64,000 nucleotides of DNA, taken from NCBI GenBank assembly GCA_965112155.1, contig OZ218103.1, one strand, 5' to 3'. Below the pieces are notes generated by a model. The model ran no database searches. It was not told the origin of the DNA and was given only the letters and a program-made list of their open reading frames with translations. Positions within the stretch are counted from its first letter, which is position 1, and the number at the start of each line of letters is the position of its first letter. This DNA comes from Podarcis liolepis (lineage: Eukaryota). A program made the translations under genes and the position numbers. This document shows positions 48,701 to 62,710 of the stretch, in pieces.

Positions 48701-51700
48701 ATTTAGCACATTCATATAAAACTCCAGATGAATTAATAACTAATTCAACAATTAAGTAGCTACTTTAATTCCTAGCATAAAAAATAATTCTATCTGTCAC
48801 TCAACTGAAAAGTCCAAGGTTCTCAAGTAGTGTCTCAGTGAGATGGGGTGCCACCACTGCACCAGTCTCTCAAACACAGTGAGGCAGCATGGCAGAGAGG
48901 ATAGGAGAAGCACTGGGTTGGTGGCAGCAGGAACAAGCATACTCATCTATACCTGCCGCTACCAATCCAGTGCTCTCCCACCCTTGCTCCTGCACTGACT
49001 TGCACAATCCTGGGCCCAGAAAGTGCATCATACAGCACAACTGTTCCATGTTTAAAAAAAAAAAAAGGACCCAAATTGTTGGAAATCATGAAACAAAAGC
49101 TTAAAGTTTTCCAAACAAAATTAGTACTGTATTACTGAGAGGGGAAAGCAAGTTTTAAATTTCCATCATTCCAATGCTAATACTGAGTGGAAGCAAGGTG
49201 GTTTGTAGAAATGACGGCAGGTGGATGGCAAACTTTCCACTGGAAGGAACATTTGAAAAGTAGGATCAGGAGATTGGAAGCTTCCTTTCACCCCCAGTAT
49301 ATTTACACTGCCCTCGCCTTGCTTGTCATGCTACCCCGCCTCACCTGTTTAATCCTGTTATATTTTGTTCTTTCAAATGCAGGTGTCCAGTTGCACAGCA
49401 CCCCCTACAGACTTTCCTGCAGCCCAGCGCTCTTTCTACCCTGCCCCCACCAGCCTGTTCTTCTCTGTCCCTCCTTACACTGGCTTTGTTGACTCTCCTC
49501 CTGATCAGGAACAGCCTCTCCAATACAAACCCAATAAAAGGTGAGAAAGGAGGAAGACCACCCCTTTCTCCTTTCAGGACTAGGCTTTCCTTCTAACGAA
49601 GATAAGTCAGCACAGAAATGCCTCCTGTCTTCCTTTGTATACGTCTCTGTGTGTTTTGTGTATAAATGAAACAACTAAAAGATTATGCATCTCTAATCCA
49701 CCCACGTCTGTGATTTTCTCTGTATTTTTAATTAAGGATATGGGGGCTGTTTTTAAGGCTGCATCTGCATGAGGTTTTGATGGTGGCAGGATTGGATGTA
49801 CTTACCCATCTGCACAGCAGAGGGTAGTTATAGTCTACTCTGCCTGCAACTGACCATATAAACTAAAGCACAACATCAATTAATATTTTATTTCCACGGA
49901 CTATACCATACCACAAGGAGAGATTTCTCCTGACCTTCCCATTGGCAGCAGAACACCAAAATGTGTTCAGAATAACTGTTTGTACATATGATCCCTAAAA
50001 ATGTAATTCTTCTGTCATGATTATCTAGAGTCTTCCTTGTTGTGTGTGTCTGTCCATGTCCATCACTACAAGATTAAAGACATTCACACATTCATGGCAC
50101 ATTAGTCTATCAATAGCTGCTAACTGGAACATCCTATATTCAGAGGCTGCCTCATTAGCAAATGCTGAGGACACTGCCTTTGGCTTGGTTTATGCATTGG
50201 AGAGGATATAACAGGCACCTTTTTAGTCCTAAAAAAAAAAAGAATACAAAAATCCTCTCTAAAACCAAACTGCCTCTATTAAAGTAGGCTGATAGGATCA
50301 TGTTTCTAATTATTCCTCTGAGTCAATTTCAGTGTGATTACTTTATATTGGAAGCCATGTACTTGAAGTGCTTGTGAAATGCAAACAAAAAACCCCCACA
50401 AAAAATATTGCTGAAATATTCACCCTCTTCCTTTAGAATTAGTGCCCCATCCACCCTTTTGAAGTGATCAATTCTGCAACTCTTCCCTCTTTAATCTTTA
50501 AGGGATCACCACTGGATAATATTTAAGTGTATTATATTTTAGTGACATCAAGGGATGCCAACAACAAGAAGAAGAAGGTTCTCTCAGTGACTGCAAGAGT
50601 CATTCCCCTCTGAAAATTCTAAGCATCTTGGTAACGTCTGCTAAATTAGCATTTTAAAGTGGTTCTGTCCCTACCACCTAGAAACTGTTCTGGTCAGTAC
50701 CCCAGAGGTTAATCCTTTCCCACTCATCTAGAATCTCTTTGAAAAAGGAGGCTTCTGCCAATGGAAAATGTCAGCATTTGCCTATTTCCTTTAGGTAGGA
50801 AATGCTGACTGTCATGGTACCAGCAGGGATATATGTAAGAGGCCACCCTGGCTTAGTAAAGTCTAAGTTTTAGAATTGGCTAAGGCCAATACCAATAAAT
50901 GTAGGCTACCAAGAAGTAACGTCTTCTATTTTTGTTTCTTTAGAAGCTGCTTGCTCTCTTTGATGTTTCCTTCCGTATGTGCTCATCAATAAGTGCATCC
51001 CTGTGTTTGTGGGCTCTAAAACTGGTGTGAATCTGTAGGACGCCTTCTTTTTAAAAGCCATTGTACTGTGCCTAGTGATTTTAGCAACTTAACAAAACAT
51101 GTCTCTCCCACATCTCTACAGGAGTTACAACCTTCCAACAGTTTGACTTCACCTCCAAAGGTGCATTCCTCCATTGTCTCCCCGAGACAAATGAATGCCA
51201 ACAACAATTAGTACATAATATGAAAAACAAATAATTGCACACTAGCTACTTTCATATTCATGCCCCAAATGTCACCTAGATCAGAGTGTGATAAAACAAA
51301 GAGGGAAATGATTCTGAAGCAACTTCTCACGAACAGTATAACAAGAGAAGCAGCCCCCAAGCTGACTTCCTTTTAGACTGTGCTTCTTTCTTCTTTGTCT
51401 TTCTCTTCATTCAGTAGCCATAAACCTATTGCCTTATTTTGTTCCACATCAACATGGCTTCTTCTATAGTTGAGAATCTTACTTGTATTGGGCCTCATTC
51501 AGTTTTATTCCCAATATTGTGATTACTTTCAGTGCCTAATATTTTCAATGGCAATTTTGTTGAGAATGTGCTACTGAAAAAGGGAGGTGCAACACCATTG
51601 CTCACTCCAGATACAGAAAAGGAGTATGGATGGAGTACTTGACCAAAGATATGAGGTAGAAAGATTCCATTCAGCTTTCTGCCATCTTTTTAGACTACCT

Positions 51701-60700: not shown

Positions 60701-62710
60701 ACCAGCTCTTGACCCACTTGTTTTTACCCACTACTATAATTTAGTCCAAAGTCAGCAATCAGTTTCTAATTTCAAGATGTTGTTTGGGGTGTGTACAAAA
60801 TTAGTAAGCTTTACAATACTGTTATTTTGTATTGTTCTGGGAACACTTCTCACTATTTCTCTCACTTAAGGAATCTCTTGTAGTAGTCTACTAAAATAAT
60901 GCTGCAAAGAAACAGTAGGTGGTTTGTTCTTTTCTGGTTCAAGGTTTGTTCTTTCCTTAACAGATCATCCTGGCTTCCTTATCTGAAGGGCAATGCAGCA
61001 GCATTATGAAGAGCATGCTCCAAAAGAAAGAGGTATGAGACTAGTTAAGCGTAGAGCAGTAGCTTCACAAAACTTATCCAAGAAGTAAAACGGTGAAGTA
61101 AGGGGAGCACTTGCAATCCTTTTCTAGATCGTATTATACAGGGTAGTAACAAAAACTGATGGAAAAGGTAGACCACACAAATCCCAATTACCCCAAACAC
61201 TACTACAAGTGCAGAAAGTTCCAAGGAGCATGGCTGACAAAGATTTCTGGGAGCAAGACAGAAGGTGGTTTGCAACACCAGCCCCACCATCATACAAATA
61301 CATGGTAAAAAAATAGTGGATTCCAAAATGTGTGTTTGTGCTGCAGAGAGATCTTCGCTGAAGACTGCTAAGTCAGATAAACCAATGTACAAGACTATGT
61401 TTCTTTATAATGTAATCTTTAAATTGAAAATTTACCTGAACCAGTGGTTCTAAAATGTTTTTCTTTCGGCCACACTTCCAGAATATAAACTTGCTCACGC
61501 CATACCAAATTGTTTGGCAAGAAATACATTGGGGAAAAGAAACTCAAATTAGTGTTTTTGTGAATATATTTATCCATAGTCTGCAAATAAAATTTTTTTG
61601 ATACTATACTACACTGAAATGTTTAAATATTTGATTGTCCTTGAATCTTCTAGCCACACCCTTTGAGAACCGCTGCTTTACAGATTCATTTGGGTGCAAT
61701 GTGGAACATTTATGTGGTCTACTAACCCTGGAGTAGAAGGCTCCAGTATAGAGTAAGGAGGCACTTGGATATTTTGTAATTATACGAAAACCTCAACAGC
61801 CTCAGGTATGACAGGTGCCTGCAATCCATGTGAGCCCTACTTTATCCCCAACATTTCACCATTATTCTTGTTCAACAATCACACACATATAAAGAATGTA
61901 CTTAATGCTATAGTTTGAAACTTCCAGATCCAGTTGGTGCCAGGTGCATCTGTGATTGTGCGCATAGCAGATGGAAGATGGGATGAAGAATTCAGATATA
62001 CATCAGAGGTACGCATACTAAGTGAATCTAATCATCACAAACTTTTCATTCCACCCAGGAAAACAAAAGGATGAGCATACTAATTAACCACTCACTGGAG
62101 AAAACCAATCTCACTTTCATGTTTACCATTTATCAATTTTCTGTGCAGCCAAATTGTAAAACAGAGCCAGATGACTTGTTTATGGCGGATTGTCAGAAAT
62201 CATGTATACTAAAAAGGTTACCAGTAACTGTTCAGAGCACAAACTAACCACACATTAGATCATCACATCCTAGATGACCTTGTCATTTGTTTCAGAGTAT
62301 TGATCAATCTTATCTGCCAGAGACAACAGATCTGTACAATAAGGAACCCTCTGGAAGAAAAATTGCAGAATTAATGTTGCAGGAGACTTCAAGAAAACAG
62401 GTAAAATTGGGCTATAGCCCTATTTATGAATGGAACAAAATTGAGACAGAAGCCACAAACAGAAAACATATTCAAATTGTGGCCAAAAGGAAGATTCAGT
62501 CTTTCTCCTGTTTTCTGTTTGTGGCTTCTGTCTCAATTTTTGGATTATTAATATAAGATTTAGAACATAGAATGGTTTGGTAGTGCTTTGTGTGCTGCTT
62601 ATGTGCTGCTTACTTCTTACTGGTCCACATTCTCCATAAGCAGTGCAGGTTTAATTGTGACTTGCATGTTTTTCTTTCAGACAAAATTGAAGGCATTGGA
62701 ACAAATTTAA
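39784..62710 (+). CDS. CCDC17: Coiled-coil domain-containing protein 17, long form, about 33 coding exons and 1520 aa. Exons 39784-39972, 40350-40487, 41230-41292, 42048-42165, 42950-43109, 43333-43452, 43895-44028, 44741-44875, 45783-46009, 46377-46462, 46839-47054, 47568-47790, 48128-48238, 49383-49540, 50543-50630, 52315-52427, 52640-52781, 52962-53054, 53844-54051, 54159-54265, 54723-54863, 55720-55874, 56181-56301, 57057-57173, 57589-57686, 57780-57992, 58390-58564, 59040-59222, 60027-60278, 60964-61032, 61928-62008, 62296-62400, 62681-62710
   Basis: Exon 1 [24 protein letters not shown], plus [53 protein letters not shown] and [13 protein letters not shown], match CCDC17 as I recall it. 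All exons have AG/GT ends and the phases join into one 4569-nt ORF. The linker exons 50543-50630 and 52315-52427 and the terminal exon are the least certain. Confidence 0.82.
44176..44212. repeat. (CA)n microsatellite
   Basis: About 18 CA units. Confidence 0.95.
53222..53446. mobile_element. Tc1/mariner (Tigger-like) MITE in a CCDC17 intron
   Basis: TA|CAGTGGTATCTTGGGTTA...TAACCCGAGGTACCACTG|TA. Confidence 0.85.
55030..55610 (-). mobile_element. CR1 LINE fragment
   Basis: Minus-strand QERDL.G.IVDS.IKM..QC...VRKA.SMLG.TRKG...IMALYK, typical of CR1 ORF2; similar to 38690-39025. Confidence 0.8.
56400..56565 (+). mobile_element. Decayed CR1 fragment
   Basis: [20 protein letters not shown] resembles CR1 ORF2 MIEVYKIMHG.EK.DR. 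Confidence 0.55.
58965..58993. repeat. (TG)n microsatellite
   Basis: About 14 TG units, 46 nt upstream of the 59040 exon. Confidence 0.95.
62437..62540. repeat. Perfect 32-bp inverted repeat with 40-nt spacer
   Basis: AAAATTGAGACAGAAGCCACAAACAGAAAACA (62437-62468) is the exact reverse complement of 62509-62540. Confidence 0.9.

Follow-up and report, generated by a model that had tools for sequence, protein, structure and literature searches.

Lizard CCDC17 probably exists in a long, 31-exon form with four predicted C2 domains, of which mammals appear to have kept the first

Where does CCDC17 end in a lizard? The locus lies in a 64,000-nucleotide stretch of Podarcis liolepis DNA (assembly GCA_965112155.1, contig OZ218103.1), the whole of which is called the window here and which contains no N. 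A first-pass annotation had proposed that the gene continues about 830 residues past the C-terminus of its mammalian counterpart, the human protein being ~620 residues long. In our judgment the region from 39.8 to 62.7 kb is quite probably a single gene, the lizard CCDC17 orthologue in an ancestral 31-exon form that gives rise to two isoforms. The homology-guided, splice-refined model has an intact open reading frame (ORF) of 1454 residues on the + strand, assembled from 31 coding exons with GT-AG junctions throughout. Aligned with the P. muralis RefSeq protein XP_077784914.1, it is identical at 1425 of 1455 residues (98%), an agreement far beyond chance expectation.

The model was built by tblastn of homologous proteins onto the window, after which the splice sites were refined against XP_077784914.1; the toad, gecko, and cobra proteins match every exon in order. 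Translation and pairwise alignment relied on the joined spliced model, and searches and folding on public orthologue proteins; the exon-17 peptide (53844-54020) was the sole piece of the window used as a database query. RNA was aligned to positions 48050-54040, and the evidence for exons 18-31 consists of the model, the 98% identity to P. muralis, and the structure models. Coordinates are collected in the table. The coding sequence is preceded by a CpG island at 37.5-38.5 kb (GC 0.61-0.67, CpG observed/expected 0.64-0.81), about 1.3-2.3 kb upstream of the ATG, which is likely the CCDC17 promoter together with a 5' exon.

Features of the CCDC17 locus in the window (positions count from the first letter of the 64,000-nucleotide stretch)
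Feature	Position	Strand	Description	Evidence
CCDC17 start codon	39787	+	ATG	
Exons 1-13	39787-48238	+	zinc-finger-like CxxC..H motif, coiled coils, most of first C2	tblastn, splice-refined model, RNA contig
Exon 14	49383-49540	+	final exon in common with mammalian-type CCDC17; ends in phase 2	sequence, RNA joint, homology
TGA stop	49542-49544	+	met if the exon-14 donor is skipped; ..KPNKR*; 692-residue product	
Retained region	49541-52117	+	intron after exon 14 or long exon-14 extension; includes the spurious exon 50543-50630	RNA contigs
Candidate micro-exon	52118-52159	+	42 nucleotides; in phase with 49540 and 52640; donor 52159/GTAAAT	
Exon 15	52640-52781	+	first two beta-strands of second C2; no in-frame ATG	RNA joints, conservation, model
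Exon 16	52962-53054	+	second C2 continued	RNA joint 52781>52962
Dispersed repeat	53230-53460		~220 nucleotides; intron 16; open in one frame	RNA depth, second copy
Exon 17	53844-54051	+	second C2 continued; its peptide retrieved the family	RNA joint 53054>53844 (X5)
Exon 18	54159-54265	+		splice-refined model
Exon 19	54723-54863	+		splice-refined model
Exon 20	55720-55874	+		splice-refined model
Exon 21	56181-56301	+		splice-refined model
Exon 22	57057-57173	+		splice-refined model
Exon 23	57589-57686	+		splice-refined model
Exon 24	57780-57992	+		splice-refined model
Exon 25	58390-58564	+		splice-refined model
Exon 26	59040-59222	+		splice-refined model
Exon 27	60027-60278	+		splice-refined model
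Exon 28	60964-61032	+		splice-refined model
Exon 29	61928-62008	+		splice-refined model
Exon 30	62296-62400	+		splice-refined model
Exon 31	62681-62710	+	ends in TAA 62708-62710	splice-refined model

The extension past exon 14 comprises 17 exons and ~762 residues, with 762 codons free of stops and frameshifts and canonical sequence at each of the 34 splice sites. Exons 18-31 would complete the second C2 domain and add a third and a fourth, with a helical linker between these two, before a tail ending in ..KLKALEQI. The first-pass annotation was right about the exon at 49383-49540, which has a cag/GTG acceptor, an AAG/GTGAGA donor, and an RNA joint to the preceding exon (48238>49383) in three samples, and also about an open, phase-consistent GT-AG chain running on to the TAA at 62708-62710. 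Its estimate of ~830 residues in 19 exons was too large, because the two exons with which it bridged the gap are spurious and add 67 residues. The junctions of that path (49540>50543>52315>52640) are absent from the RNA joints and from all homologous proteins, and only the combination of 50543-50630 with 52315-52427 keeps that path open. The residues of the former exon occur in no homologue and no RNA joint reaches it; the latter is likewise in no homologue and lies where RNA depth is zero (52250-52449) in all four runs. A separate start at ATG 52306, just before 52315, was dropped as part of a stretch that RNA does not cover.

Exon 14 can instead be joined directly to exon 15 (49540>52640), which preserves the frame, as does a splice from 49540 to 52118. 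The latter would include a candidate micro-exon of 42 nucleotides, preceded by a T13/C-rich tract (52056-52079), the translation of which resembles a segment of gecko RefSeq CCDC17, SSQEQRSQASPGPSR. Its donor is used in RNA (52159>52640); use of its acceptor was not seen among the RNA joints. Between RNA contigs of two related-lizard samples the length of the T13 tract (52056-52068) varies, by 1 and 2 nucleotides, which fits a polypyrimidine tract and not coding sequence. The locus would thus yield a short product of 692 residues and a long one of 1454 residues, or of 1468 residues with the micro-exon.

A long CCDC17 is already known in the databases, where a 1455-residue RefSeq model exists for the same genus. 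The lacertid entries (P. muralis XP_077784914.1 and Zootoca vivipara XP_060132934.1, both 1455 residues, and P. lilfordi CAI5777312.1, 1454 residues) have in common with the window model a 31-exon ORF, 98% identity, a predicted direct 14>15 junction (..KPNK-R-KI.AVLEW; ..KPNK-R-KIEAV in the RefSeq models), and the ..KLKALEQI C-terminus. They are computed models from other species, and omit both the micro-exon and the read-through short isoform.

It is at the exon 14/15 junction that RNA complicates the picture. The RNA comprised Logan contigs of three lacertid samples (X1, X3, and X5) and one raw-read run (X23) with only one or two reads on the locus; the contig samples come from a related lizard that differs from the window by ~2.4% in non-coding sequence and by 0-1 nucleotide per exon. 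Contigs of this kind omit minor forms and cannot show transcript ends. Contigs of 4.65 kb (X1 and X3) contain ~1.5 kb of upstream CCDC17 coding sequence, the exon 13>14 joint, and then unbroken sequence from 49383 to 52157/9. Downstream, the joint 52159>52640 is present in X1, X3, X5, and one raw X23 read, 52781>52962 in X1, X3, X5, and X23, and 53054>53844 in X5. A single contig carries exons 2-14, the retained stretch, and exons 15-16, and exon depth is alike upstream (4.1) and downstream (4.3) of the stretch in X5. In the X1 and X3 contigs the retained stretch carries 66 substitutions and 19-20 gaps, a non-coding rate, compared with 0-1 difference in the flanking exons.

Since the contigs pass the donor at 49540 and meet the TGA, the frame there reading AGG TGA at 49539-49544, the short, mammal-like isoform looks dominant in the sampled lacertid RNA. 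The same ending recurs elsewhere. Skink RNA-contig ORFs (P0090, P0091, and P0218; 681-699 residues on contigs of 2.6-2.7 kb) end in the read-through R, so that read-through RNA appears common in squamates. In RefSeq, too, short CCDC17 from lizards, snake, alligator, frog, Amia, ray, and salmon invariably terminates in this R. An AATAAA hexamer (49533-49538) overlaps the final exon-14 codons just before AGG TGA; the RNA contigs continue beyond it.

Several observations weigh against a single gene with a long product. No splice from donor 49540 was found among the reads and contigs, and contigs of three samples cross the TGA to 52159. As written, the read-through RNA encodes the short protein only and is an expected target of nonsense-mediated decay. 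The contig data are compatible with an internal transcription start, perhaps within the interval from 49.6 to 52.1 kb. Two genes stand at this locus in several RefSeq builds, and split and fused models are both predictions. Use of the donor at 49540, and hence the long protein in this lizard, is inferred from conservation.

These observations give rise to two other explanations. The downstream exons could be a decaying relic, transcribed as spliced 3' untranslated region of the short CCDC17 mRNA and never translated, as the dominant RNA form, with all of them after a stop codon, might suggest. We regard this as very improbable: a relic would hardly keep 762 codons clear of stops and frameshifts behind 34 canonical splice sites, its residues are identical to those of P. 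muralis (98%) and Zootoca (94%) at the level of the translated N-terminal part, and its exons differ by 0-1 nucleotide from the RNA when the retained stretch differs by ~2.4%.

The other explanation, that two adjacent genes are present, is unlikely in our estimation but has more in its favor. Short CCDC17 would end at TGA 49542-49544, and a downstream gene would have its own promoter within 49.6-52.16 kb, a first exon ending at 52159, and a start at ATG 51987, ATG 52029, or a Met inside exon 16; on this view the assembler would have merged overlapping transcripts into the single RNA contig. The RNA path 49383-52159>52640 does carry an in-frame stop, the frame is open from 51945 with both upstream ATGs in frame with exon 15, and X23 has a few reads on exons 15-16 and none on 49250-51049, although these amount to only one or two reads. 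The putative leader, however, spans the length-variable T13 tract and is not conserved, and no CpG island was found at 49.5-53 kb, CpG observed/expected being 0-0.19 in the retained stretch. A protein begun where the lacertid split models start (one begins MILIARFYH) would lack exon 15, despite its conservation, together with the strands that open the second C2 domain. Exon 15 contains no ATG, yet it is conserved to amphioxus (VGFQVDRVKDALDGEGKVRLTVY).

Annotation practice points both ways. Older or other RefSeq sets list CCDC17 (~581-694 residues) beside an "uncharacterized LOC" (689-715 residues) in P. muralis, P. raffonei, Lacerta agilis, and Zootoca, and models split in this way are also found in Elgaria, Rhineura, Candoia, alligator, Amia, Pristis, and Spea. 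A splitting of just this sort had been foreseen from the window alone. The newer P. muralis and Zootoca sets, however, fuse both parts into 1455 residues, and the fused architecture is universal in invertebrates, which argues for one gene.

Against 1.84 billion representative proteins, the exon-17 peptide retrieved 14 relatives, including CCDC17 of a toad (1454 residues) and a gecko (1233 residues), along with shorter stand-alone models from alligator and bowfin. Proteins of 1300-1570 residues from amphioxus, Ptychodera, Mya, Dreissena, an annelid, Lingula, and a flatworm are colinear with toad CCDC17 over residues ~9-1433. In all, fused colinear proteins are present in at least seven invertebrate lineages, a gastropod among them, and in many amphibians and reptiles, including turtles; a chytrid (a flagellated fungus) has a partial protein with the first C2 region and the extension. 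Within the extension, identity falls from 98% in P. muralis through 94% in Zootoca, 71% in an agamid, and 46% in the toad to 39% in amphioxus. In comparison with invertebrates, identity in the extension (38-39%) is no lower than in the coiled-coil part (30-34%), and with the colinear invertebrate proteins this upholds the earlier proposal that the long form is ancestral.

To place the mammalian proteins, a tree of 53 proteins and 646 columns was computed by IQ-TREE quick search under LG+C20 and rooted on invertebrates; a long Podarcis protein, with 98% identity, stood in for the window model. That protein groups with squamate CCDC17, split from a clade of CCDC17-like proteins at 99-100 in the Shimodaira-Hasegawa-like approximate likelihood ratio test (SH-aLRT). 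Within long-type CCDC17, monotremes and marsupials are the sister group of sauropsids (SH-aLRT 97), and the length of their branch suggests faster sequence change. Their proteins have 575-738 residues and end 3-13 residues after DPPP: the marsupial ones 3 residues past it, and those of platypus and echidna 13 residues past it (..AREPSPQHTPSLG), the position of the lizard read-through stop (..NQEQPLQHKSNER). The expectation of a C-terminus near this motif, voiced for human CCDC17, was thus borne out in monotremes and marsupials.

Mammalian CCDC17 resembles the lizard protein from its zinc-finger-like N-terminus through the coiled coils to the first C2 domain and ends at the lizard exon-14 donor; exons 15-31, and with them the other three C2 domains, have no counterpart in it. 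Fishes, amphibians, reptiles, and invertebrates all yielded matches when the extension was the query, and among the candidates scored in two protein searches (800-2544 and 386-1228 residues) there was no mammal or bird match to it. Nested in the long-type clade yet ending at the exon-14 donor position, the mammalian protein reads as a truncation, as had been suspected. From these sequence relationships, mammals are best read as descendants of a long-type gene that kept the short product and lost exons 15-31, and mammalian CCDC17 as the short isoform made permanent. The neighborhood GPBP1L1-CCDC17-NASP is reported to be conserved from coelacanth to mammals (PMC4082323), in agreement with the orthology indicated by the tree. 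No discussion of a mammalian truncation or a C2 array of CCDC17, nor any paper devoted to its structure or evolution, was found in the literature searched.

Birds present a separate case: none of the CCDC17 search lists contained a bird protein, though alligator and turtles scored at the top, and birds may have lost the gene. A short CCDC17-like paralogue was seen in sharks, ray-finned fishes, lungfish, and amphibians, and in no amniote of the sample. At ~600-670 residues it has the same short architecture and ends ~10-14 residues after VDPPP, but forms a separate clade (SH-aLRT 100), and no extension was found attached to it.

What the extension encodes is suggested by structure prediction on orthologues of the window protein. 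AlphaFold2, given an alignment of 38 sequences and, as target, a partial Varanus protein of 1033 residues, gave a mean predicted local distance difference test score (pLDDT) of 77.7; a second model, of a 453-residue skink C-terminal ORF, reached 83.0. The models contain four beta-sandwiches and a helical linker, and a disordered linker covers exon 14 and the junction. The first domain, the one retained by mammals, superimposes on AIDA (Z = 13.1, root mean square deviation [rmsd] 2.6 over 136 residues) and on the PI3K C2 domain (Z = 12.9), and the second on DOCK180 DHR-1 (Z = 12.6, rmsd 3.0 over 151 residues), with exon 15 supplying strands E283-292 and E298-307 of the Varanus model. The fourth aligns best with myoferlin C2A (Z = 9.9, rmsd 2.6 over 118 residues), followed by otoferlin C2A, PLC-beta, and DOCK C2 down to Z = 9.4; all of its top 50 structural matches are C2 domains. 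The third has a C2-like strand pattern and a profile match to the second domain at 93% probability, and we infer that it too is C2-like. Foldseek with the whole model ranked ferlins first, as tandem-C2 proteins. Long CCDC17 is therefore predicted, on these models, to hold four C2 domains, of which mammals would retain the first alone.

This likeness is one of fold. The first, second, and fourth domains superimpose on solved C2 structures from ferlins, DOCK180 DHR-1, PI3K, and AIDA at 6-17% identity, with no detectable sequence relation, and a sequence search of the PDB with exon 17 returned noise only. A Pfam scan of ten exon-bearing open stretches and six full-length relatives, using a model set that lacks PF28454 and PF28455, found nothing; these two families are recorded for CCDC17 proteins, and their precomputed matches fall in the short part of the protein. 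Unlike the known C2 proteins, CCDC17 has no transmembrane anchor, kinase, or guanine nucleotide exchange factor domain. C2 domains of the PI3K/DOCK/AIDA type are commonly calcium-independent.

Taking the locus as one gene, a mechanism for its two products can be proposed. The phase-2 donor of exon 14 has the form AG/GTGA, and if it were skipped translation would stop one codon later, so that one locus would make a short protein of the mammalian type (coiled coil plus first C2) and a long four-C2 protein. Tentatively, and with some doubt, we suggest that this donor is an ancient regulated switch between the short and four-C2 proteins, operating from sharks to lizards either as a detained intron or as a choice between donors 49540 and 52159. 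The read-through stop within the AG/GTRA donor would be its mechanism and the split and fused RefSeq calls its footprint; the short state would have become fixed twice, in mammals and independently in the CCDC17-like paralogue, at the cost of three C2 domains.

Two further features lie close to the junction. Both a RefSeq isoform from boa (P0005) and a model from Elgaria (P0062) skip, in frame, the 93-nucleotide exon equivalent to exon 16, and the X1 and X3 contigs end exactly at the 3' edge of exon 16, where alternative splicing may occur. In intron 16, an open stretch (53279-53428) was considered as an exon and rejected as part of a dispersed repeat that the RNA joint 53054>53844 skips. A second copy of this repeat, 80% identical, lies at 7262-7483. 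Its RNA depth is ~1e5-2e5 (summed word depth), with many inverted joints at 53250/53429, and an Rfam scan of it gave no match; it looks like an abundant foldback element or one resembling a short interspersed element (SINE).

For annotation, the lesson is that a phase-2 AG/GTGA donor creates an instant stop, at which pipelines split the gene into a named part and an "uncharacterized LOC". CCDC17 itself is an almost unstudied marker of multiciliated cells: it marks ciliated cells of the human oviduct (bioRxiv 10.1101/672626) and, in mouse lung, rises together with Foxj1 (PMC12832812). Our likeliest guess is that the C2 array serves to dock membranes or proteins at cilia or at basal bodies. Should mammals indeed have only the stump of a conserved four-C2 protein, functional work in mouse and human sees one quarter of the ancestral array, and the full role of CCDC17 would be better studied in Xenopus, zebrafish relatives, or lizards.

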